In this document: positions 8,517-59,967 of the stretch, one piece after another
How positions within the stretch are numbered: the stretch's first letter is position 1
How the letters are laid out: each line of letters opens with the position of its first letter
Assembly: GCA_037447605.1 (NCBI GenBank)
Contig: CM074808.1
Coordinates: forward strand, 1,302,001 to 1,366,000
Direction of reading: 5' to 3'
DNA length: 64,000 nucleotides
Source: Zygnema circumcarinatum SAG 698-1b
Lineage: Eukaryota; Plantae; Zygnematophyceae
Notes under the pieces: generated by a model
Told to the model about the DNA's origin: nothing
The model's input: the letters and a program-made list of their open reading frames with translations, nothing else
The model's database searches: none
Position numbers and translations under genes: made by a program

Positions 8517-11399
8517 ATGGTATCTTTCCTGCTCAGAGCCTCGTCTTATCCTGGCACCAGAGCAGCGGCGCTATCCGTGGCAGCGTTAAGGATGTCTGCA
8601 GCACAGTCGGCTCGTTCTGCAGCAGTGCAATTATGTGCAGCTTCTCAGCTGTCCAGTTTAGCGGCCCCTTGCAGTGATAGACATTGCTTGTCTGTCGGGT
8701 CCGCTGAACTTCATTCAAGGACGTCTAATCTGTTTGGAGCCCTTCGAGTACAGCAGCCCCTGCAGTCGCCTCTCAGAGTCCGGCCAGAGTTTAGTCTTAC
8801 AGTATGTGAGCAGGCAGTCACGGAATTACCTCCAAGACTTCAGAATATTGTGAAGGGCTTTCAGGCTGTTCCAGATCCTAGGGCACGGTATCAGCAGTTG
8901 CTACACTATGCAGCAAAGTTGAGCCCTTTGCCAAAGGAGTATCACACCACAGAAAATAAAGTTGTCGGGTGTGTGTCGCAAGTATGGGTGGTCCCGACTC
9001 TGAAGAGTGATGGAACTGTTTACTTTCAGGCAGATTCCGACTCTGCTCTGACTAAAGGTTTGGCGGCCTTGCTAGTGGAAGGTCTCAGTGGGTCTCCGCC
9101 CGCTGATATTTTGAGAGTAACTCCAGATTTTGTTCAAATGTTGGGGCTAAAGCAGAGTCTTACGCCTTCACGGAACAATGGCTTTTTAAATATGCTGAAG
9201 TTGATGCAGAAAAAAACACTAGAATTGTATATACAGTCGGAGGCAGCACAAGCAGGTTCATCTGGCTCTGGGGAAGGTAGGGCTGAACAGTTGACAGCAT
9301 CTGGTGATTACGCAACATCCAGTAGCGGCGATGGCGGTTCTAGTAACGGTGAAGGAGGACCGAGCAAAAAAACGCTTGACAGGCCCATATATAGTGGCAT
9401 AAAGAACAAGGTGAGCCCACCTAGATTCAGGATTCTATCACTGGCTATCCGGTTGGAATCAATTCATCCTCTTTGAATAAGAATGACGGCTGTTCGTTAC
9501 AGAAATAAGACGACGAAACAAACAAGTAGGGAACTTGAAGAGATTTGTACTTCTTATCACCGTTGCTTATCAGCATGATTTGCTCAAATGGCTTGCTGTT
9601 TCTGTGGCCCCTTTGTTTTCTTTCTGTCGCTAGTAATCATGTCTATCTCAAACAGTGGAGTTTCAAAGGTAATCAGTTACCTAGACGTTATAGACGGACT
9701 CGTCCTTGCTTTGGTCAGCAAGGACGTGCCCATTGATCATCTTGCAACAGCTGAAATATTTCAGAGTTACACTGCTAGAAGAATAACAGTGAGACATTTG
9801 TATTTCCACCTGGAAATTTCCAGTGAAATGTGCTCAAGGATGTTGAACAGAGTTGATTCCTGTTTGAAGCTGGATATGGAAATAATTGACTTTCAGTGCA
9901 GGCTATAGCATGGAAAATAAAACAGGTTTTCTGTTCAGATATCTTCAGGTGTTTGCCACCCTGAAGAGTGCTCCACAGGCGTGAAAAGGTTATTGTAAAA
10001 GTACCAACATGTAGAGTTGCAGAAAGGCATTAAATCTGAAGAGTTAGCTGAACAAATTATTTATAGTTAGTCGACATGGTTTATATTTTCTGGTTTAGAA
10101 ACGTGTTTGTACAACGTCTGACGCAACTTCGTTTGATATGAGGTGTTGTAATTATTCAATACTACAACATCAACACGATTCTCCTTGTTCATGTATCTGC
10201 AGCATTCACGATGAGCCTGGAAATACTTCTGAATGAATGAATGGAGCTCACTCGTAACTCACATACATAGCAGTTTAACTTTCCATCCTCGGGTCAACTT
10301 GCAACTGTACTCTGCCTTCACATATTGCAGTTCAAAGTTTATTACTGAGGGCTCTCTTCATTGTTAAAATTTGAATTTCAAGGAAATGGAAGTTGGAACC
10401 CTTTCTGCTGACGTGGAGACCACCCACAGCCGAATAGACTTTCAAAGCCTTGAGGCATCTCTTTTCGAGCATTGAGGACAAGATGAATTATGTACGATTG
10501 TCTCTTTGCATGGTGTGTTTCACCTCAACTCAAGAGCGATATTTTGCTTCACGTGCGCTGTATAGCTCAATCATGGGCAATGTGCGTTTGTGCAGTTAGA
10601 GAAGGAACTTGGAGCTGAGGTGGACATTCAAGATGTGAGTCACCAGCATGCCGGCCATGCTGGGGTGCATAAAGGAGCAACTGAGACACATTTCAAGTGA
10701 GTTTCGTTGACTAATCCAAAAAGTTTTTTGTATTCAGAACATGGTGTTGTCATTCAATGTCAGCGAACAATTCTATTCGCCTCTGGTGCTCTAGCAGTAA
10801 TGTGAGGGGCGAGGAGCCCAGCGAGGGCACCAATACTGCGTGGAGGGGAAAAGAGCCTCGTGGTTGCATTCTGCATCCAGGGGTCTGATGAATAAAGATT
10901 GTGGGATAAACAGAACTGCCTCAGTTTGATTATCTTGTGCAGATCTTGAAAGCTTTGGCTGCTCATTTTATTCTTCTTCATGTGAACTTTGCCATATGCC
11001 AATTGAAGATTATAGAAATGCGCAAGGATAAAGAAAGAATTTGGGGTTTGTTCGTGGTAAAGATTAGCTGCAGCAGCAGAGAAGTGATGAAACGTGGGTA
11101 CGGGTGCCGCCGCCTTTCCATGTTTCCCAGTGCTGCATGGTCCTGTCCTTGCCCAGTCACATCGAATCAAGGCTTACACTGTCGTTGGGATGGGCGTCTC
11201 TCGAGGGCAATAATCTGACTGACAAAGGCTGTTCCTCGCTTCTGTGCGCAGTGTGAAGGTGGTCTCCCAATCCTTTGAGGGCCTCAACACGGTGAAGCGA
11301 CATCGTCTCGTGTACAACCTTTTGAGCGAAGAGTTCGGTAAAGGGCTGCACGCCCTCTCCTTGGTGACAAAAACGCCGGCAGAGGTTCGACAGGCATGA
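8517..11399 (+). CDS. SUFE1: Plastid SufE1 sulfur-transfer protein with C-terminal BolA domain, 3 exons (8517-9410, 10596-10696, 11252-11399)
   Basis: Transit-peptide-like N-terminus, SufE motifs KVVGCVSQVW and ADSDSALTKG, BolA motifs DVSHQHAGH, VKRHRLVY and LHALSL. Confidence 0.95.
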
Positions 11400-12353
11400 A
11401 GAGTATCGATTTCTACAAATACGTTTTTTGCCCTGACGAATACTCTCCTAGATTGTTAGCGATGCTGAAAAAACCATCCCTAGCAGTTTTGATGAAGGCA
11501 GACAGTTGAGTTTCGTTCAGTCGAGATCATTTCTTTTCGAATGTTATTCGCTGATTCTTTCCAAAAAAATAAAATAACTATTGTCCTTTGTAGAGTCCCA
11601 TCACATTCTTTAATCTTGGCCCTACTCCCAGAACGCGCTATAAAAGTAATATATAAGGCAAAAAAAAATTCACAGCCAACCCTAATTTGTGCCCCGCCCG
11701 GGGACGGCCGGTCCCTCCCTCCGGTCACTCCCTTCATACATGAGCTACAAGAAAGCGTCCCCGCGCAGTCCCCCGAGTCCCCGGCCGCCGGCGATTTGTG
11801 GAGATCCGGTACCCGCCCGCAAGGCGCCGCGCGGCACCGCCCCCTACCTGGCCACCCGCCCGGGCCCGTCCCCACCGTCCGATCGCGCACTTTCAGAATG
11901 GAACGGACGGTCCAGGTCGTCCGAGCTGGCAAGAGCGGTGGCTGATTGGGCAGACCGTACGGAGACTTTTCTGGATGAGTCAAATTGGGAGTGCCACGTG
12001 GCATCAAGAGCCAAAAGGGCGTGACGTGGCAGATCCTGACTGGATTTTGTGCTCTCTTGTGCGCGACTCGTCCCCCGAGAGGCCGGCGCTGACATAGAAC
12101 CGGCTGCTGCGCATAGCGGAACTGGCAACAAAGATCGACATCTTGCGAGTCCGTGCGCGATATTCGGCGGCGACCAATGACCGGCGGACGGCCCCTCGCC
12201 CGGCCATAATGCGGGGGACACGGTGGACCTGCCACGTCACCGCCGCACGTGTGAACCATCCCTTCCCTCTCTCCCTCGCTCTCTCTGGCTCTCGCTCTCT
12301 CTACCTCCCTCTCACGCGGGAGAGCGGGAGGAGGGGCGGGAGAGGCCGCAGCC

Positions 12354-13808
12354 ATGCGGCCATGGTGGCAGCAGCGCTTCTCGCTGTCCTGGGACGGAGG
12401 CCGAGCGCGCGGGCTGCCCGTGGCGTACGGCAAGTTCCAAGAGTCGGGACGACTGCTTTCGGGGTCGGGGCCAAAGTCGGGATGGGGAAGGGGAGTGGGA
12501 AGTGCTGTGGCGTATCTGCTGCTCGCACCATGGTACAAATCAAGATTTATAGGGCTGAAGATGGTGGCGCTCATGGCTCTGCACCTGATCCTGCTCCTGG
12601 CCCTCTTCCTGTCAGGATTGCTGCTATGGCGGCGCCATGCTTTTGTAGACATAGGGCGCGACTGGCCAGAAGCATGGGGTTCCTGTTTGAACCCTCCCTT
12701 GCAGTACTGGTGGAAAACGCTCCATAACCCGCAGAGGGTGGAAGTCTGCAGCGAGCTCGTCCTTCAGGCGTCGAGGAGAGGCAAGGCGGCGCAGAAGAGA
12801 GGGATAGCTGTTGGAGAGGGGAGGGCGGAGAGAGCGCCGCTGGACGGATGTGCGCTCGCGCATGGCAGCAAGGAAGGAAGTTTTGCAGCAGGCGTGCGGG
12901 AGAGGGAGCTGTCAGGAGTGTCAAGTTGGCGGTGGAGTCGCAGGAAAGAGAGGCTGCCAACCGACGGTTGCAGGATGGAGTGGGTGACTTATTCTACGGA
13001 ATGCAGCGCGAACCTGAATCGTATTGCAGATATTTGCGACATGATGGGAATTTCGCTGCAAGTGGTGGGCCTGCAGGAGTGGTGGATGGGATGGGGAGGG
13101 CGCACGCGCATGATCAGAGAAGTTGTACAGTCTCTTCCAGCTGATCGCCTGGTGCTCAGTTCAGATGCTGACGATGTGCTGCTCCTTCCGACTTCTGCCT
13201 GCTCCATGGAGCGACTGATGGAGAAGTTTTCTTCAGTCGGAAGGCCGGTTCTGGTGGGGGCGGAACGATATTGTTATCCGGATGGTGAGAGATGGCAGGA
13301 ATACCCTAATCCTCCCAGAGACACTCCGTATAAGTATGTGAATGGAGGTACATTTCTCGGTTTTGCGTGGGCCATGCTGGACGTCACTGGTCAAGCATAT
13401 CGAGGAGACTGCATCGATGATCAGCGCGAGGTCACTCGTGTGTACCTCGACAACACGTCGTATGTAGGTCGACCTAATATAGAAGGGGCGAGGGAGATAG
13501 TCACGCGGTTGAGCAGTACATTGGAGCATCCTGGCGAGCGTCATCCCTACCTGCAGCTGGACTGGTACAACAACCTGCTGCTGCCGCTTGGAGGGGCAGA
13601 GCTCAGTGAGTTTGACTTTTCGGGATATGAGATCAATGGGACGGTGAAGAGCAAGCTGACGGAGGGCAGACCCTGCATTTTTCACCAAAATGGCGATAAG
13701 AAAGAACGACCAAAAAACCCCGTCGTGTGGCCCCATCTTATCAAGGCCATAGGTATAGACAGGCTTCGTGAAAACGAGGGCTACTTAAAGGGGCAGAAGG
13801 GCCACTAG
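12354..13808 (+). CDS. Intronless membrane-anchored glycosyltransferase of the PLOD/LH3 GT-domain type; the real start may be a downstream Met before the TM helix
   Basis: TM segment LMALHLILLLALFLSGLLLW, then motifs collinear with the lysyl-hydroxylase-3 GT domain: SSDADDVLL, VGAERYCYPD, YVNGGTFLG, DDQREVTRVYLD, LQLD and PCIFHQNG. No 2OG-Fe(II) domain follows. Confidence 0.85.
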   Translation: MRPWWQQRFSLSWDGGRARGLPVAYGKFQESGRLLSGSGPKSGWGRGVGSAVAYLLLAPWYKSRFIGLKMVALMALHLILLLALFLSGLLLWRRHAFVDIGRDWPEAWGSCLNPPLQYWWKTLHNPQRVEVCSELVLQASRRGKAAQKRGIAVGEGRAERAPLDGCALAHGSKEGSFAAGVRERELSGVSSWRWSRRKERLPTDGCRMEWVTYSTECSANLNRIADICDMMGISLQVVGLQEWWMGWGGRTRMIREVVQSLPADRLVLSSDADDVLLLPTSACSMERLMEKFSSVGRPVLVGAERYCYPDGERWQEYPNPPRDTPYKYVNGGTFLGFAWAMLDVTGQAYRGDCIDDQREVTRVYLDNTSYVGRPNIEGAREIVTRLSSTLEHPGERHPYLQLDWYNNLLLPLGGAELSEFDFSGYEINGTVKSKLTEGRPCIFHQNGDKKERPKNPVVWPHLIKAIGIDRLRENEGYLKGQKGH

Positions 13809-14881
13809 ACGTGCTCTGGTGTAGCTTGGGTTGTCGACATGATAGCAGCAACTCTCGAACTCCTTTTTCTGATCGCCAATTCGCTCTGACATGCTGTTTC
13901 GGAGGGCATTTGCGACGTGGCACCTTCGTTGTTCGCAATGCTAATATCAGCATAGTAAATGAACGTACAAGGAGGTGCAATGAAACAGGCCTCGTGGCTG
14001 CGAAGGAGGCTGATATAAGCCGCGAAGATTGAGTCAGCTTGTGTCACCAACTCGGCGGCGGAAGACTCACTGAGAACTTTTTCCAAACGATTGCCCTTAT
14101 CTGGGCATAGTCGTCATGCTGCGTCAGGCCTTTCCTGCCAAAATGACAAGATTAACAATGCGTCCGTGACCAGGAACTGTTCAGTTTCAGGCTAAGTACT
14201 GTTGAATCGAAAAGAAATCGAGGAGAAAGCTATTTTTCTTCCCTCAACGATGGGAAGGCTAAGCGTAGGTTGCCCTGTAGCAACAGGCGGGATCGTAATT
14301 TCAGAGAATGTCGTCACTTTGAGGGTGCATGGCCACCTCACCAAGCGAGACAGAGTCAACCTGCCGAAGGCTTCTCCTTTTAGAAGATTGTGTTCAGTTT
14401 TTGTGAACGGGAGGCGTAGTGTCAGTGGTCCCAATATAATGGGGAAATTCTATGTTACTTTTAACGTAAGCCTCCTTGGTCACGGGTTTTGTGTTGGCTG
14501 ACATATTCACGTCCAAATTTTGATTCCCCTCTTTAGAATCTTACAGGAGCCATAAGGCCAAGGTGCACAGGACGAGCTCACACAACGTAAAAGAACAAAA
14601 TTCCTTGTGGATTATGCCATCCCTTTCAAGCAGGCTTAGCATGTTGAAAAGTCAATGACTAAATGATCTGATCGCAACAACGTATAAAAGGCAAAACTAC
14701 AAAAAAAATAGCGGAGAACCTAACCCTAACAAGATCAAAAATTGCCAACGTAAAACACCCCCTCAATCTCGTCAAGCTCGATATCTGCATCTCTGCACTG
14801 GCAGCTCTAAAAAGTATGTACAATCCGTAAGCAGACGCGAATAGGGATCTGCTTAAGCCCAAATCCGTAATCTTGTCAGAC

Positions 14882-17800
14882 CTATGCCAGCCTCCTCTCT
14901 TCCTCGTGCGCCTCAAAAGCCATTTTCAGCGCTTCTTCTGCAGAGCTGAGAAGGGACTGCGCCTCAGCCCCAGCTCCTTGGAGGTCCCTGCTCTGCCGAA
15001 TACGAGCTGCGAGCTCAACCGTAGATTGCCGCCAAAGATTGGCCTTCTCTCGCATTGCTGACAGCTGCATTATCCCACCCATTCAATATGTAAAAAAAAA
15101 AAAAAAAAATACTTGAATGAATATCGTCAAACTAAGCTGTCCTGATGACACAAAATAGTTGCACACTTTGAAGCTACGAAAGCAGCGTGCAAAGCCATCC
15201 GAGGACCTCTGTAAAGGATTGGATGGAAGCTGCAAGCTCGATTTAGACAACGCATGGCAGCCTGCCTCAGGGTCATGGGCTTCAGGCCTCCTCTCGCTCA
15301 GCAGAAAACACGCACGCAAAAGCCGTAAAGTGGTGATAAGAACGGACGCTTACCCTTCGAACATACTCTTGGTCCAGCTCTTCCAAAGCTATTAGCATGC
15401 CTTGCGAGTCGGATGCAGCCCCGTCTTCTATTGCCTGACTCCTCTCTCCGTGTGACCGTTGTTTCTGCCGGAAAACCTCCCGATCACGAAACCTGCGTGT
15501 GCGGGTTCGAAGTGGCCTATCCGAATAATCCAAGTGAGAGTCTCCTAGGATGTGCTCTCTCTCTTCGGCATCCCCCTCCTTCACTTCCGTTCTCCTCCGC
15601 TGCCGTCCTCCTCCCTCGCTCCCATCATCAGACGAAACGTACCCTGATCGAAGCACTCCGTCCGACCGCAGGGCTGTCGGCTCCTGGAGAATTGGCGGGA
15701 GCTTCCCATTCAGAGGTAAAGTTCCCACTGACAGGTGGTTAGGTGGACGAGAAAGGACTGCTTTCTTTGATGGAACGGGCACTACTGCATGGAACAGCGT
15801 GAAGTCCTGCGAAATGTTGGGTGGAACATATTGTTAGGCTGAGAAAACGAGAGAGGAGTCTGAGAACCGGGTGAAAACTGTGTGAACATAGAAAAGTAAC
15901 AGGGAAAGTGGTAGAAATGCTCGGAAGGACCCTGACTCAGCCAGAACTGAGAGAGATAAACCTTTGCCAAACACCGTGACAAAGGAAGGCTAAGCAATGG
16001 ATGTACACTAGAATAAAGAGCTACGTGGTTGTGAAACAAATGGTGAGCTTGAAGAACAGCCAGAATGGATGAAGGATAGGCGAAGAGTAAGAACACAAGG
16101 AGAAGGAGAGGATATTGTAGGCTATAGGAGGCAAATCTGCAATGAAACAATGCAGGGACATTCAAGCGGTGGAGACTAACCAAGCCCTGACACCCGTAAT
16201 TGAATGTTCAGCCATCATCATGCAATGGCTCTCTGAGCAAAAATATAAGGGGCACGCAAGAGTTGGGAATATGCAAGAGGTGGAAATTACCACGCAGCGC
16301 AGTCCATTTGGCAGCCTGGTCACCATAGTTCTGTAGCACATCGCCTCAAAAAAAAAAAAGTCACATCAGAGGAGCAACAATGCTAAAGCGAAACTCTAAA
16401 CGCACTCGGGAAGTGCGCAAAGACTTACATTCTGCAAGTGCTGCAAGTTTCGTCAACTTGAAGTCTCTAGAAAAAAAACCTAAACAGATAAGGACGGTAA
16501 AAACGAAGACATGATACAAAGGAGGAGGGACTTCTTCCTAGTACCACTGACAATGCAAAAGAAAAACCAAGAAATCAAAGGCACACTCTTCTGGCCTGCT
16601 CGCAAGGCATATTCGTCTATAAGTTGCCGATCGGGGAACAGAATCTACTGCAAATACATGTCAGCATCTCTGATCTATACTCATTATGAAGCCAAAAATG
16701 ACACGTTGACACTACAATACAGGCATTGCCTCGCAAGTAGTGACAGAATAAAGACCCGGCCCGCTGCACAGTAGCTCCATGTTTGCAAAAATCTTCTAGT
16801 TTCCGTCACTACTATTTCCGGCATCCTTGCTGTCAGCCTTGTTTCAAGCTTACAAACGACCGCTTTCTCCCTTCGCAGCCATCCTCGCCGGAGAAGCTGA
16901 AACTTCTTGTCATTCAACCCATTCATGCCACTGCCTTATCCATCAACACTTTAAGGAGGAAGCCAACCGGCTGGCCTTGCGGTAGGAAGCCGTGTATGCC
17001 AAATCACGCCTTTCAGTTACTTCAGACTACATAGAACATGGGATTACGCGCCCTGTCGGAAGACAGGTGGGTTATAGCCACTTACACAAAGCGGTGGTTA
17101 TACATAATGTCGCTGGCCCGGTACGAATGACGCGCTGTTACCACCCACGCAATGGTCCAAATAAGACAGCAAACCTGCCAGGATATGACACAGATAAGAC
17201 TGCCCTAGCCAGCAGTACCTCATGATTAAGATAGTGTTCAACGATCACTGACTCAATTCCTTCTGGTCCAGCACTACGCAGTTTGCTTCCTTAGAAGGTG
17301 GACAGTGATGCTGTTTTTCCGTCGCATTCCATGACCCCGCAGATACGTTTTCCCCATAAACGCAGTCCAGAATGAGAGGGCCCCTTTATGCTCACCTTGT
17401 ATCCTAGCAGAAGTGGAAGCATCAGTCCCTTCCAGCAGTACAAGAATCTCCATGTCGCATCGTTCCATCATCTGCATTGGGCAGCCGCAGGCAGCAAACT
17501 TTCCAATAAAAAACAACAAAAAAACAAAAACTATAAAGTACAATGTAAATGTATAGTCCGCTCAAACCCTCCGCTGGCCTACTTGGGAATATTAGATCAC
17601 ATACTGACAAGTCAAATGTCTTCCCCTCAATACTTTGGTCCGAACTACAGTGAAAGGGCCTCCATGACAGTAGTAGCCCCCTATACAAATCTCACTAAAT
17701 ATATTTTATTGAATTTTATCTACAGAGGCTGCACTCCAGTTGTTTGATTATTTCCAGATTTCATGATACTGGCACTTGACAAGGATGCCGACGATCGAAC

Positions 17801-26500: not shown

Positions 26501-29500
26501 TGTCAAGATAGATCTCTGCAGACCCTCGTCAGCAAATTCTATCCATATCAACCCTTATATTTAAACTGTATCCTGTATCTTTCAAAAAGGTTCTCTGTTC
26601 TCTATAGAGAGATGGTGGCACTTTGTACTCAGCATCGACACAACCAACTGCCAGCTGACATCATGAACTATAGACATGTCCGAAGAGAGGCTTTTGAAGG
26701 GCATGGTCCAATGCAACATGCAATTCCTGGAACAGGCACCATGCAACCGAACAGTGGTCCATAGAAGTTGATTTCCCCACTCTATTTTCGACTTCATTTG
26801 GTTTATGGGAGAGAGAGAATTGAAACAGGTGAACATCATCACTGACCTCTATACTCAAAGTTTTCACTGCCTCCAGCCCTCCCTCATCATCCACGTATAT
26901 CTTTACGGCATGCTCTCCAACCAGGTACACCTGCAAACTTGCCACACAAAACAGTTAACCCAGCGAATAAACTAAGTGCACTGGAAACTCTCCTTAGGAA
27001 CGGACCCAAACCATAGGCAATCGCCATCTGCATTGCCATATAGCCTCCAACAAACAACTAAAGCTGACTAAAGCTGTAACAAACCCTCACCAGGTTGTGG
27101 CCAGACCCTAAAGGGAGGCATTCCGTCCCCACTGGCTTCGCCAAACTGTGCTTCTCGCAAATAGCTTCCAATCGCAACTGCCATATTTGCGCCTCCATAG
27201 CCAGGTTGGCGCACTGCCAATGTACTCTCCATGGAAAAGTCTCTCAGACACTTGAGAAGGGAGTCTGCTGAAATTGAAGAGGAGAGCAGCAAGGGATGGG
27301 AATGCCTTTCTTGCCACCGAACATAACATTGTCTCGCAACATTGCTAGCTTGTTCTGGGCATTCCTACGCTTTGCAGGCAGCAGCACTTAGCATATGTCC
27401 TCCAACTGCAGTGAATTCAGTGAAGTTTGCACACCTTCCAAATGCGCGGCTGCAAGTCGGGGCGATGCTCCCACAGGCAGCGCAGCCAATGGCGGAGCTC
27501 CAGCGAGGCGACCTCCCCATTGGTGGCGCCGTGCACCTTGTACTCCGCTTCGGCCACAGCGGACAGCTCGCCCTGCAGCCCGTTCTGGGCGAGACTTCCC
27601 TTCAAAGCCGCCACCTTTGCGCGCCAACCGCTTCCGTGGTGCCCAAAACCAACATCATTTTGCTCGGAATCACCGTTGAGAACGGAAGTAGAGTCCTCCA
27701 TCTGAGTCTTCCCATTCACATTCGCATATAAAGCGGATGACAATGGGGGCAGGTTTCCTCTGTCTATTTCCACATGTGAGCCGACTTCCTCCTCAACGCC
27801 CTCCTGCGTCTTTGGACTTACTGGATCAACTACTTCGCCATCCCCATCCTCATCCTCATCCTCATTCTCATCCTCATTCTCATCCTCACCATTCCACTCT
27901 TCCCAGCCGTCAGAGCTCTCCTGCAGATTCTCTACCGCAAGCTCTTGCTCTCGTTCCATGTCAAACTTAGCAGTCTCTTGAAGAGCAAGATGGCCAGCTC
28001 TTGCAATTCCACGGTGTCGGAAGCCGGGAGCCATATCAAGGCATACAGTTTCAAAATTTCGGTCGTTCACAAAGTTGTGAGTGACTGCAACTGTTGTTTC
28101 AAGATTCAGAACGCAATGCCACCAGCCCGAGGGCATGAATATCGTTTCTCCAGGAAGTTGAGTCACTTCGATCGGCTTCTCCTCCGGGCTCAGCATAGGG
28201 TACACCTCCAACCACCACTGCTCCCTCCAACCAGTACAAGACTTCCCTCACTATTTGTATCCACAGTGAGCACAGCACAAGCATGCACTGATCAGAATCC
28301 ACCTTCCAAAAGCTCACCTGAAGAGAGGTTGGCCCGTCAGAGTGCGTCTCCCCATCGAACTCGTCCACGTGAAGTGTCACTCCTGGTGGTACCTTCCCTG
28401 GTGGATAGAGCGCCCACCTGCATAGAATCGATAGACACCAAATCTTCAATATGGGAGTCCTAAAGGCGAACTCTTCGCTTGTTGACAGACAGATATACCC
28501 CTTCATATCTTAGAGTTCCTTTAAACGCTCACACACCTTTTACGGCCCACAAGGAGGGTGTTCCATGCACTGGTGAGAGAGGGGTCCACATGCCAGCTTG
28601 CCCCTGAGCGAGCAGGACCCATAATGAGCCACCGGTAAGGGGGGCGGCGACTTCCGAGAGAAGACAACAAATCCTCCTCGAAGTGAGGGGGGACGGAGTA
28701 GTCCTTCAGCAGCGGGGGCGCACTTTCGCCGAACTGTGAAATCACAGTATGTCAATCAGCCACAGAATATGCCAATAACCGCTCCTCTCTCTCTCTCTCT
28801 CTCCTTTTAGAATACAGTATAAACAAACGTAGCATCTGGATTATCACAGTCACAGAAATACATATAGAATCAATACCTCTTCATCAAAGACATACAGAGG
28901 CTCTTCATCGTGTTGCTGTGCAACGTACGCGGCATAATCTGCCAGCCGCATCTTTACCGGCTTCCCACTAGCCACTGTCACTCTAAGTGCTGCTCTGCCA
29001 TAGTTTTCTGACAGCTGCTCCAATGTCCATGAGCTTTTAGCATTCCAATCCTCCGTAAGGTCGGTCAACATCACCTGCAACACAGTGTGGGGGAAAGGAA
29101 TGAGAGAGGAAGGATGCACTGTCATTTTGGGACGAAGAATTATTTTTCTTCATTGGCCATCCTACCGTCCCGTTAGGAAGTTCACCTTCAACATGGTGAT
29201 CCATAGATGCATGGTCATGATACTACATGACCTGCCACAGAAAAAATATGTTGATGACAAGGCCATCCAGCTTATTGTTGTCTCTTCGGCACAAAACGAG
29301 TGCGTTAATTTTACAGATGAATCAGTCGTAACTGCTCCGGGCTTGTTGTTACTGCAATTGAAATACTCCCACAGGACAGTTCAAAAACATATGTCACTTA
29401 TTCTTCAAACGTACTATCTATAGACAGACACAAAATGGCTGCCATTTGAAGCTACCGGAATGCGTCCGTCGTACAGCTCTGCAAACTCTTTAGGACTGAG

Positions 29501-46182: not shown

Positions 46183-48584
<2,402 letters not shown>

Positions 48585-56643: not shown

Positions 56644-59600
56644 ATGAAGCTGAAAGACCGCTATTTGAATTTGATAGACAAAGCGAACGACGCCATGGCA
56701 CGGCTTGAGTTTGATACGGATTCGCAAGCAATGAAAGTTGCAACTGCAGTGGCTATTGGCATCGGGGTAACGGCGTTTGCAGGAGTAGCTGTGGCAGCAG
56801 CCGTTGGAGGATTTGTTTTGTTTCATGAAAGGTATTCTTCCATCAAGACTTGGAATGGAATTTCAGGGGCAATTGTGTGCAGCAATTTGGAGGGACAAAT
56901 TACCAATTATGGTTACTGCTAGTTTCAACAGGCTCTTAAAGCAACCATTTTCGGTTCCACCATGTACACTTTTCGGGTGCTAGATACTGCAAATGAGCAT
57001 TTTTTCTATTACCATTCGAGACAACTGCTCGTTCTATTTAAATGAACGTTGCATTGTCTAGTCGAGCTCATAACACTACAAAACGTTAGCTTGAAGATTT
57101 TGTCACGCTTATGTTGACCATAATCAGGGAATGCTGTACAATTGTTCTTTTTCGGTATGGCCCACATTTGGATTCTGACTGATTCATGGGCATATTAAAA
57201 GTTTCTGGGGAGCATGTTTGGCTCGCCAAAGCTGACTCACGCATTATTTTAAGCTCCAACACCTGCCGTTCCACATTCTGCAGAGGTGTACTGAGAGGGG
57301 CCTTTGAGGGACGACCAAAGCCCCTAAGTCCAGACCAATGGCGACGCGCATTTGAACCTGAGTTCGGCCGACTCAAAGGAGGTGGAGAAAAGTTGATTGG
57401 GCGTGTTCGGAAGGGGGTGAGTTATCTTGCTATATTTACTCAGGCGTACCTCACTCTCTGTCAAGGTTCAGCACGGCACCTCGCAAAATTACGGTAGTAG
57501 TAGCAGTTGTAAATTAATAAGTGCGAATAGAAAAATGCATTATAATATTGTAGCACACCCGAGAGTATATGTATATGTAGCACACACGAGAGTTTTGCAG
57601 AAGGTTTTTGGACGGCCATTGATCCTCACGAGTTGTGAGCATGTCACGAATGTCAAATGGTTTGTGGCAATCCGTTGAAGCAGGAGAGGAGGACAGTCCT
57701 CCGTTGCCCGTCTGTTATTGTTGTGCCCACGCTACGTTTTGTTGTTCTCTCTCCTTAACTTGTTGACTTCCCACGTTTTATTGACAGGGGTGTGATCCGA
57801 ACATCAGAGGAGAGGTTTGGCCTTTTCTCCTTGGCCTGTAAGTACCTTCTTTGCTGCCGCCAAAACTCCGTCCAGTGATACAGTTTCTCTAGATACTTTG
57901 TATTCTATCTTACAGACTACTTTTGAAGAAGAAACATTTCGGCCTTGAGGGTGAAACCAGCTTCCTTGTAAGGCTTCAGCAGAACTAGTTTGTCTTTTGC
58001 TCCCACACGCCCTGCTCTTACTATTGTCAGTATTCAAGGCTTGTTAACTTAGCAGCAATGTTCCACTCGAGGCCTCCACGTGTGGCTTAGAAATTTTGGC
58101 ATTTTCGAGGTCTATGTACATTTGTATGAGGAAGAACTTCAGTATACAGCAGGATATGATTAGGATCAGGATTATATGCCTTGTCGTTTGGCTTAGGACG
58201 TTCGACTTGGTTGGGCTTGTCAGGTCAAAGAGCTTTTATTTGTATAGCTTGCACTGGGTTGGGTTGAGGGCAGGCGAACTTAGGTTTTGGAGGGGCAAAC
58301 TTTTGTGCATTCAGGTATGATGGCAACAGCACGCAAGCTGAACGAGAGGCGCAACGGGTTGAGAGAAAGTAAGACCCTTTCAGAGGGATACATCTAGAAA
58401 GTGATGAGTGGAATATGCTTATTCAGAGTTGTTAGTCGTCTCTTTATGCTGCAGGTAGATGTTCTCGACAAGTCAATCTGAAAGTTACTGCCGCCGTTGT
58501 GGCAAGCAGCCTTTCTATTTGGGCTTAGTTGTTTTCTGATGGCAAGTCATTTGTTCGTGGCATCAGCTGGTGGGAGGGGTAAAAGGACTATGCTTGAGGT
58601 GGTACAGCGCAGTGCTGCAAGCTTCTGCTATGACCTCGTCTAAGACATTTTGTGATAAATGTCACAGACGGCAGTATGAGGAACTTCGGCATCGATGCAA
58701 AGAAGTGGGTGCGAGGGCACAAGAGGAGGAGAAGCGGCGACTTGCTATTCAAAGAGCACAAGATGAAGAGATCATGGAGAGTCGCAAGAGTCAAAAGGCA
58801 GCAGCTGAAAGGAAAGATGTACAGGGGGGAAAAGTAAACGACGGCCCACTTAGGGGGACTACGGAGAGTGCTGTCGAGCCGTTGGTCTCGGAGGCAACCC
58901 CACTTCTTGCAGCTGCTGAGGAAGAAGAGAGGCTTGATAACAGGGAAAGGCAAAGTGAACTGGAAAGGGACGATGTGGACAGACGGGGGGATCTTGCTGA
59001 TGGGGATTCCACATCAGATTCGCAAAAGCTGAATTCAACCGAGGAGGGTAGTGAAGCAGAACAGCGCAGCAGCGAGAATGGAGGAAGCAGAACACACTGT
59101 ACAGGTTTGGATTCACCGGCTAAAGTGAATGATGACGGGCAATTCCTGGTCGATTTCGCCACGTGGTGCCGAATTATGCGGTTGGATGCCGTGAGGATGA
59201 ATGCGGCATGGATTCCGTACTCCTCACAGGCTCCAACAGCGGCAGAGGAAGCAGCTTGCTTGGCTGCAGAGGTTGGTCTGATGGAAGATGCTCACTTAGA
59301 GCCATCACGGAGACATCACGCTGCTCGTTTGGTAGCAATATTGGAAGCATATGCCCTTCATGATCCGGAAATAGGATATTGTCAAGGAATGAGTGACTTG
59401 CTGTCACCGTTTGTAGCCTTGATTGAAGATGACTCCGATGCGTTTTGGTGCTACGAAAGCTTCATGAAAAAGGCACGGCAGAACTTCCGACTTGACGAGA
59501 TCGGCATCCGGAAGCAGTTGGAGTCTGTGTCCCTCATCCTGCGGAGAGGAGACCCGGAGTTGTTCGCCCACTTGCAATACACGCAGACGGAGGATTGCAT

Positions 59601-59967
59601 CTTCGTGTACCGAATGATTGTAGTGTTGCTGAGGCGGGAGCTCTCCTTTGAGCAAACTCTTGGGCTGTGGGAGGTCATTTGGGCAGATGCTGCGGCTGCT
59701 GCAGCAGCAGATGCAGCTGCTGCAGCCGCGGCCGCAGCAGGGGGAGTTTTGATGAGAAGCAGATCCGACGCACGAGCAGGGGCCACTTCAGACTTGTTGC
59801 TCTTCGTTATTGGAGCAATCATCCGGCAGCGGAGGAAGGAGATTTTGGCATGTGGAAGCGTGGACGAGATACTGAGGCTGTGCAACAGCTTTACAGGGAA
59901 ACTGGATGTTTGGTCGCTCATTGATGAAGCTCGCTCCCTTGTGGCGAAAGTTGGCACTGCTGTATAG
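56644..59967 (+). CDS. TBC-domain Rab GTPase-activating protein (Gyp7-like), 5 exons, N-terminal hydrophobic segment
   Basis: GCDPNIRGEVWPFLLG, arginine finger RLDAVR, glutamine finger GYCQGMSDL, YRMIVVLLRRE and LWEVIWA followed by a poly-Ala run. Confidence 0.92.

Follow-up and report, generated by a model that had tools for sequence, protein, structure and literature searches.

The window analyzed here is a stretch of 64,000 nucleotides (nt) from Zygnema circumcarinatum SAG 698-1b, a green alga and relative of land plants (GenBank assembly GCA_037447605.1, contig CM074808.1, forward-strand positions 1,302,001 to 1,366,000). At window positions 12354–13808 on the plus strand it carries an intact open reading frame (ORF) of 484 amino acids (aa) with an ATG start, exactly as an earlier sequence-only reading had delimited it. 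Judged by sequence and structural model, the product is a member of the GT_PLOD domain family, to which the glycosyltransferase (GT) domain of human lysyl hydroxylase (LH) 3 (LH3, or PLOD3) and mimivirus R699 belong, and not an LH/PLOD protein. Our best explanation, to which as a whole we assign a probability of roughly 0.6, is that the protein would be a type II membrane-anchored, Mn2+- and UDP-sugar-dependent GT-A transferase of the LH3/R699 family, acting in the lumen of the endoplasmic reticulum (ER) or Golgi. There, to judge by LH3 and R699, it would attach a hexose to the O-linked glycan of a secreted glycoprotein of the wall or mucilage. The gene would go back to one ancient transfer between a chytrid-like fungus and an ancestor of these algae, followed by retention under purifying selection. 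The enzyme family is a known one; the chytrid-algal branch of anchored, stand-alone GT_PLOD proteins is large and unstudied.

Family membership was first apparent from sequence. Pfam placed GT_PLOD (PF25342) at aa 209–368 with an E value of 7.2e-19 and 68.4 bits against a cut-off of 27, and up to E 1 it was the sole family returned, with no 2-oxoglutarate hydroxylase domain and no GT34, GT8, or GT6. A phmmer comparison with Protein Data Bank (PDB) sequences matched nothing but human LH3 (E 4e-10 to 7e-9) and mimivirus R699 (6e-7), and a profile built from 62 family members covered the whole LH3 GT domain (E 1.4e-45) as well as R699 (3.9e-39). An AlphaFold2 model built on the family alignment had a mean predicted local distance difference test score (pLDDT) of 83.7 and a predicted template modeling (TM) score of 0.80. 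Foldseek ranked LH3 and R699 at the top (E ~1e-15 and 5e-14; TM 0.78 normalized to 6wfv), with other retaining GT-A enzymes next at ~1e-4. Superposition with VIA-align gave Z 24.0 and a root-mean-square deviation (rmsd) of 2.6 Å over 237 residues for LH3, Z 23.7 and 1.9 Å over 217 residues for R699, and Z 11.6 for the next fold, the plant xyloglucan xylosyltransferase XXT1.

Thus Pfam, phmmer, profile, and superposition agree with the earlier description of a stand-alone LH3-type glycosyltransferase lacking a hydroxylase domain. That description had also held that the protein matches along its length; the whole of the LH3 GT domain is indeed covered, but only by aa ~203–476 of the window protein, the first ~200 aa being made up of a tail, a single membrane helix, and a helical stem. 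The protein ends ~8 residues past the GT domain and has neither the accessory nor the lysyl hydroxylase domain, so it does not share the three-domain plan of LH/PLOD proteins. A known plant carbohydrate-active enzyme (CAZy) family as best match, which the sequence-only reading had named as evidence that would count against it, was not found: the plant wall GT-A families (GT34 XXT-type, GT8, GT6-like) yielded no Pfam match, and the next fold scored a Z of 11.6 against 24. The parts of the gene and protein are as follows.

12264–12353, plus strand: 5′ leader; transcript-like contigs start at 12264 (run X4) and 12339 (run X1).
12354–13808, plus strand: complete coding sequence, 484 aa in one exon; an ORF collinear with a 2,105-nt contig.
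12354–12554, plus strand: N-terminal tail, aa 1–67, predicted to be cytosolic and poorly conserved; pLDDT below 50 for aa 1–47, poor alignment with relatives P0151 and P0002.
12555–12626, plus strand: predicted single membrane helix or signal anchor, aa ~68–91; Kyte-Doolittle 2.64, model helix 59–92.
12627–12959, plus strand: predicted luminal stem, aa 92–202, with two confident helices and then a low-confidence linker in the AlphaFold model.
12960–13781, plus strand: GT-A catalytic domain of the LH3/R699 (GT_PLOD) type, aa 203–476, from Pfam, profile against PDB, Foldseek, and VIA-align.
13083–13085, plus strand: Trp244, aligned to LH3 Trp75 (uracil stacking) and invariant in an 11-sequence alignment.
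13164–13175, plus strand: D271-A-D273-D274 motif; D271 and D274 correspond to LH3 D112 and D115, and D273 stands at LH3 Tyr114.
13416–13424, plus strand: D355-D356-Q357, aligned to LH3 D190-D191-Q192.
13683–13700, plus strand: H444-Q-N-G-D-K449, aligned to LH3 H253-G-N-G.
13809–14443, plus strand: 3′ untranslated region; the X1 contig ends at 14443.

We then compared the catalytic site with that of LH3, mapping residues through phmmer and family-profile alignments and taking their roles from the published LH3 work (PMC6082870). In LH3, W75 stacks on the uracil, D112, D115, and H253 are the Mn2+ ligands, and mutation of D190 or D191 abolishes GT activity (PMC6082870). Uracil is held there by double stacking between Trp75 and Tyr114, next to a flexible loop (Gly72–Gly87) and the gating aromatic W145, and Tyr114 is essential, the Y114A variant being inactive (PMC6082870). 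The uracil-stacking W75 corresponds to W244 of the window protein; the metal ligands D112, D115, and H253 to D271, D274, and H444; D190, D191, and Q192 to D355, D356, and Q357; N255 and G256, part of the H-x-N-G motif, to N446 and G447; and W145 to Y308. Conservation was assessed in 11 algal and chytrid sequences, which covered all mapped residues except Y308 and N446: W244, D271, D273, D274, D356, Q357, and H444 do not vary, D355 is retained in at least 90% of the sequences, and G447 in all or at least 90% of them. D271, D274, and H444, which reproduce the DxxD plus His arrangement, are putative Mn2+ ligands, and D355/D356 supply the Asp pair equivalent to LH3 Asp190/Asp191. The superposition on LH3 and the comparison of the DADD sequence with the metal-binding Asp motif that the sequence-only reading had proposed came out in its favor, with D271-A-D-D274 aligned to D112-x-x-D115. 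On these alignments the protein is very probably an active LH3-type transferase.

The topology is consistent with such an enzyme. There is one hydrophobic segment (aa ~68–91, Kyte-Doolittle 19-residue maximum 2.64), bearing out the type II-like N-terminal anchor already proposed. In the model the corresponding helix spans 59–92 and is followed by stem helices 97–124 and 134–154 (pLDDT 86–98) and by a disordered linker to the GT domain, with pLDDT below 50 at aa 187–199. Two N-glycosylation sequons (N367 and N428) and ten cysteines are present; C132, C206, C217, and C353 are invariant in the family, and the stem cysteines Cys111 and Cys132 are conserved, Cys111 within an “SC[LIVW]” motif common to the window protein, Closterium, and only some chytrid members. 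Type II transferases of the ER or Golgi are typically built in this way, and from this we infer an ER or Golgi location.

To look at expression, we placed contigs assembled from four runs of this organism on positions 11000–15500, and three of the four runs had contigs there. Run X1 gave a 2,105-nt contig equal to 12339–14443, with no gaps and one letter different, and depth was zero on either flank. In three runs, a 289-nt interval of the neighboring gene (15065–15353) was skipped, its ends reading CT..AC, that is, GT..AG on the minus strand. Three runs also had a loose end at 11252 that continues into at least 25 identical foreign letters and marks a further splice-like junction upstream. 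The runs are likely RNA because of the splice-like joints at 11252 and 15064/15354, and the transferase gene appears to be expressed as a gene-sized, unspliced transcript. That it is intronless, as first read from the sequence, agrees with a contig collinear over 2,105 nt while the neighbor’s intron is spliced in the same runs.

By sequence reading, the interval 12264–12353 holds no ATG, and an in-frame stop lies upstream of 12354. An alternative start, Met70 at 12561, lies immediately before the hydrophobic segment. As a non-conserved tail of ~60 aa likewise precedes the membrane helix of P0151, a full-length orthologue of 480 aa, we kept the 484-aa model and mark its start at Met1 as uncertain. 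Directly 5′ of the start codon, a CT-rich tract (~12262–12312, plus strand) falls within the earliest transcript contig and may be a pyrimidine-rich core promoter or leader.

Next, we examined how the family is distributed. Word-indexed homologue searches returned only two to five matches, with low-complexity words filling the candidate list, and an exhaustive search of 1.84 billion representatives was used; it found 944 proteins at E ≤ 1e-3, 22 of them at E ≤ 1e-30. The three closest relatives, at 61–72% identity, come from a sequencing run, a EukProt transcriptome, and a metagenome. Among the best 150 relatives, the 33 with names all belong to Closterium (at least five paralogue clusters) or to chytrid fungi, namely Quaeritorhiza, Homolaphlyctis, Synchytrium, Caulochytrium, Irineochytrium, Kappamyces, Blyttiomyces, Entophlyctis, Batrachochytrium, Phlyctochytrium, Polyrhizophydium, and a Chytridiales species. 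The subfamily is richly expanded in chytrids and was otherwise observed only in Closterium and the close relatives of the window alga. No land plant occurs among the 21 named of the best 23 matches, where an orthologue as similar as that of Closterium would rank; this fits the earlier remark that the family is not known as a standard part of land-plant wall biosynthesis. A GT_PLOD cluster search restricted to clusters of at least 50 members returned virus and chordate clusters and is not informative on plants. The label of an animal or giant-virus type domain, which the sequence-only reading had attached, stands as to LH3/R699 domain type, but the nearest relatives are chytrid fungi and Closterium. 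Literature searches on PLOD with chytrids and on PF25342/GT_PLOD brought up no paper on the chytrid-algal branch, for which databases give automatic names only; a 2026 Journal of Biological Chemistry paper on lysyl hydroxylases does not mention fungi, algae, plants, phylogeny, horizontal transfer, or choanoflagellates.

The best phylogenies of the GT domain place the algal proteins in one subfamily that also contains chytrids. In a quick tree of 104 GT domains, the window protein and its two companions form a trio (support 100) inside a 16-row clade (96) that includes five chytrid genera as well as a Closterium clade and is itself nested in a 69-row clade (99), where every named member is a chytrid or Closterium. 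A more careful tree of 58 rows (ultrafast bootstrap/Shimodaira-Hasegawa-like approximate likelihood ratio test) joined algae and five chytrid genera at 81/92 and the window trio and chytrids at 83/95, and it contained a 31-row chytrid clade without algae (96/87). From these trees, the best estimate is that the algae are nested within chytrids. We lean toward an ancient transfer between fungus and alga as the source of the gene, its direction being probably from fungus to alga, because several deep paralogue clades occur in chytrids and the algae fall in only one of them.

A viral origin was weighed against the same distances. Giant viruses (nucleocytoplasmic large DNA viruses) or another virus with a collagen-glycosylation cassette might have supplied the gene to algae and chytrids independently, or have served as an intermediate. 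Viruses commonly carry GT_PLOD domains, the structure of R699 superposes closely (Z 23.7), and the metagenome scaffold ERZ19398053 (locus L013, 1–5400) encodes a 799-aa protein with two GT_PLOD domains adjoining two GT25 genes in a compact, virus-like layout that resembles a viral collagen-glycosylation cassette. Viral and phage-like sequences are nevertheless far more distant, R699 scoring 6e-7 where chytrid matches score 1e-48 to 1e-80, and the short members (200–300 aa), which are phage- or bacteria-like, are not part of the 69-row eukaryote clade. When IMG/VR was scanned with two family motifs, 85 pattern matches resulted, of which not one was confirmed as a relative. We regard a viral source as very unlikely.

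Gene structure in the relatives bears on the age of the algal gene. The Closterium paralogues P0152, P0009, and P0105 occupy 1317, 1557, and 1692 nt, equal to the length of each product plus a stop codon, with intron-bearing neighbors beside each, and the metagenomic relative P0002 is a single ORF of 1251 nt. All algal copies examined are thus intronless, whereas at least three of the four chytrid genes examined contain introns; chytrid spans include 1286 nt for 353 aa, 1781 nt for 562 aa, and 2402 nt for 514 aa, with mostly small introns. Being common to three Closterium paralogues and the metagenomic relative, the intronless state is old and does not mark a recent retroposition or transfer. 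No intron-containing streptophyte orthologue, the finding that the sequence-only reading had set against a horizontal origin, was found. Its suggestion that the lack of introns pointed to horizontal acquisition or retroposition holds in part: transfer is favored, but a recent transfer or retroposition is not, as the relatives are also intronless and composition at third codon positions is host-like.

Retroposition, in which a processed copy of an intron-containing host gene arose within the alga’s own lineage, would account for the single exon, and we regard it as very improbable. By sequence reading, no genomic A-tract follows the 3′ end at 14443, there is no paralogue in the window, and no intron-bearing parent occurs among the sequences examined. 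Neither mark of a processed retrogene, a 3′ poly(A) relic or an intron-bearing parent, was found within the window and the algal relatives examined. The intronless state is moreover common to a 61%-identical relative and the three Closterium paralogues, and so predates the lineage.

Several observations on gene models in the relatives are recorded here in their own right. In Batrachochytrium salamandrivorans (locus L009, 2022–6402), two 514-aa GT_PLOD genes stand in tandem, one intronless (1545 nt) and one spanning 2402 nt, which shows local duplication in a chytrid. Quaeritorhiza haematococci KAJ3080828 (P0004), the chytrid protein nearest to that of the window, has an insert of ~40 residues at aa ~305–345, before the SDxDD motif in an otherwise conserved stretch, that looks like an intron retained in the gene model. 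Annotated fusions join GT_PLOD to an expansin-like DPBB domain in a chytrid, to F-box/LRR, and to kinase/EF-hands in Closterium (P0026, P0049, and P0013); they may be merged gene models or real, and the expansin link would hint at a cell-wall role. In Closterium assembly GCA_027943385.1 (locus L011, 7918–9692), a gene whose product has at least 945 aa with GT8 and GT64 domains lies ~2.2 kb from paralogue P0105.

The composition and surroundings of the window gene are those of its host. G+C content at third codon positions (GC3) is 0.59–0.63 in the transferase gene, against 0.43–0.62 in neighboring exons. The nonsynonymous divergence (dN) from relative P0001 is 0.25, synonymous sites being saturated so that only dN is usable, and the ORF is intact in three species. 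On this sequence evidence the gene is old, host-adapted, and under purifying selection, and no recent arrival. That all neighbors are intron-rich, as the sequence-only reading had it, was overstated: 3 kb 5′ of the transferase gene, a single ORF of 319 aa (8517–9476, plus strand) encodes an entire SufE domain (Pfam E 4e-41) and is apparently a gene without introns in its coding part. Three exon-sized ORFs, at 27417–28211 (minus), 46183–46755 (plus), and 58570–59967 (plus), carry parts of, taking the domain assignments in that order, a JmjC/cupin domain, the N-terminal domain of an ornithine/aspartate carbamoyltransferase (OTCase), and a RabGAP-TBC domain; these are ordinary nuclear genes on the same contig as the transferase. 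Contamination by chytrid DNA was considered and is ruled out by the flanking plant-type genes (SufE and OTCase) on one contig, the host-like GC3, and the 61–72%-identical copies in related algae.

A number of points weigh against the explanation we favor, beginning with the active site. The essential LH3 Tyr114 is replaced by Asp273, invariant in the subfamily, so that the motif becomes D-x-D-D, and the donor lid loop (Gly72–Gly87 in LH3) is 8 residues shorter. With Tyr114 changed to Asp and the loop shortened, donor binding may differ from that of LH3. Only Trp75 of the double-stacking pair is kept; the Trp75/Tyr114 pair with its loop is a feature of LH enzymes and not of the whole Pfam family. 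We know of no enzyme assay for any member of the subfamily, and the RNA nature of the runs is only a guess. Only 33 of the best 150 relatives have names, and metazoan LH sequences were absent from the matches checked and did not enter the trees. Finally, approximately unbiased (AU) tests rejected neither the grouping of all ten algal rows in a single clade (p 0.46) nor that of all 54 non-algal rows (p 0.225, with a log-likelihood lower by 22 units). The nesting of algae within chytrids is therefore unproven and the direction of transfer unsettled, and a single acquisition is compatible with the data.

The active-site changes raise the prospect of a protein that kept the fold without transferase activity, as a sugar-nucleotide-binding or scaffold protein. 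The inactivity of LH3 Y114A (PMC6082870), at a position occupied by Asp here, and the 8-residue shortening of the loop that carries LH3 W75 would fit this. Across the family, however, little or no variation occurs in the three metal ligands, the Asp-Asp pair, or the stacking Trp, the D-x-D-D sequence restores a canonical DxD and so suggests a variant rather than decay, and purifying selection is strong. Loss of activity is in our judgment quite unlikely, and we read the protein as an active enzyme with a somewhat altered donor site.

The AU results likewise give room to vertical inheritance, in which a stand-alone GT_PLOD gene of an early eukaryote was kept only in chytrids and this algal group after many losses, the intronless state being secondary. 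Both p values leave a simple two-branch tree possible, and the domain is an old one that occurs widely in animals, viruses, and phages. Against this, losses would be needed in land plants, other green and red algae, other fungi, and most protists; the best trees put the algae within one of at least three chytrid clades; the stem “SC[LIVW]” motif is common to algae and only some chytrid paralogues; and four of four algal genes examined are intronless despite intron-bearing genomes. We consider vertical descent unlikely, though it is the strongest competitor to the ancient fungus–alga transfer that we prefer.

The reaction proposed for the algal enzyme draws on its two characterized relatives. 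LH3 and R699 both transfer glucose from UDP-glucose onto a galactose O-linked to a hydroxy-amino acid of a protein (PMC6082870, PMC9546862), LH3 being the galactosylhydroxylysyl glucosyltransferase of collagen and R699 a UDP-glucose-specific collagen glucosyltransferase (PMC9546862); transfer onto galactosyl-hydroxylysine is known for these two alone. By analogy, the window protein might add a hexose onto a protein-linked sugar, an assignment of donor and acceptor that we put forward tentatively. A narrower version, in which the chytrid-acquired transferase glucosylates galactosyl-hydroxy-amino acids on a collagen-like (Gly-X-Y)n protein as part of a collagen glycosylation route like that of animals and mimivirus, strikes us as very improbable; if true, collagen-type glycoproteins would be part of the algal wall or mucilage.

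To our knowledge, the GT_PLOD enzyme family has been known only from animal collagen maturation and one mimivirus enzyme. The analysis suggests that the O-glycans of wall or mucilage glycoproteins are elongated in algae by a step that land plants apparently lack. Chytrids and algae interact as parasite and host, and the gene is a candidate for fungus–alga exchange between such groups. Practical value is modest: the protein is a defined target for enzyme assays and, as genome editing has been reported in Closterium, a knock-out target in that genus.

Compared with known systems, the window protein shares with the GT domain of human LH3 (PDB 6fxr and 6wfv) the GT-A fold, 24% identity over the superposed domain, the Pfam family, and the aligned D-x-x-D plus His, stacking Trp, Asp-Asp-Gln, and H-x-N-G elements. 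LH3 is a soluble ER-lumen protein, whereas the window protein would be membrane-anchored with a helical stem; it is without accessory and hydroxylase domains and, besides the Asp at Tyr114 and the shorter lid loop, has an extra insert of ~25 residues before an L-D motif. R699 of Acanthamoeba polyphaga mimivirus (PDB 9dyt) has the same fold and a GT domain likewise without a lysyl hydroxylase domain, but is viral, 458 aa long with a further C-terminal part, and only 21% identical; its glucosyltransferase activity has been shown biochemically (PMC9546862). The plant XXT1 (GT34, PDB 6bsu) and the chlorovirus PBCV-1 protein A64R have the general GT-A fold in common with it at Z 11.6 and 11.3, half the structural score of LH3 and R699, and with no Pfam match to GT34, GT8, or GT6 the window protein is not a member of those families. 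Closest are the chytrid “PLOD1-3-like GT domain-containing proteins” (including Synchytrium microbalum XP_031022171, Homolaphlyctis, Quaeritorhiza, and Batrachochytrium salamandrivorans) and Closterium GJP42862 and GJP52100, which at 33–51% identity have the same full-length plan of tail, membrane helix, Cys-containing stem, and GT_PLOD domain. They carry identical SDADDV, AE..C[YW]P, GDCxDDQ, and HQNGDK motifs and fall in the same clade. The chytrids have many paralogues, some in tandem, and introns occur in at least three of the four chytrid genes examined and in none of the algal ones.

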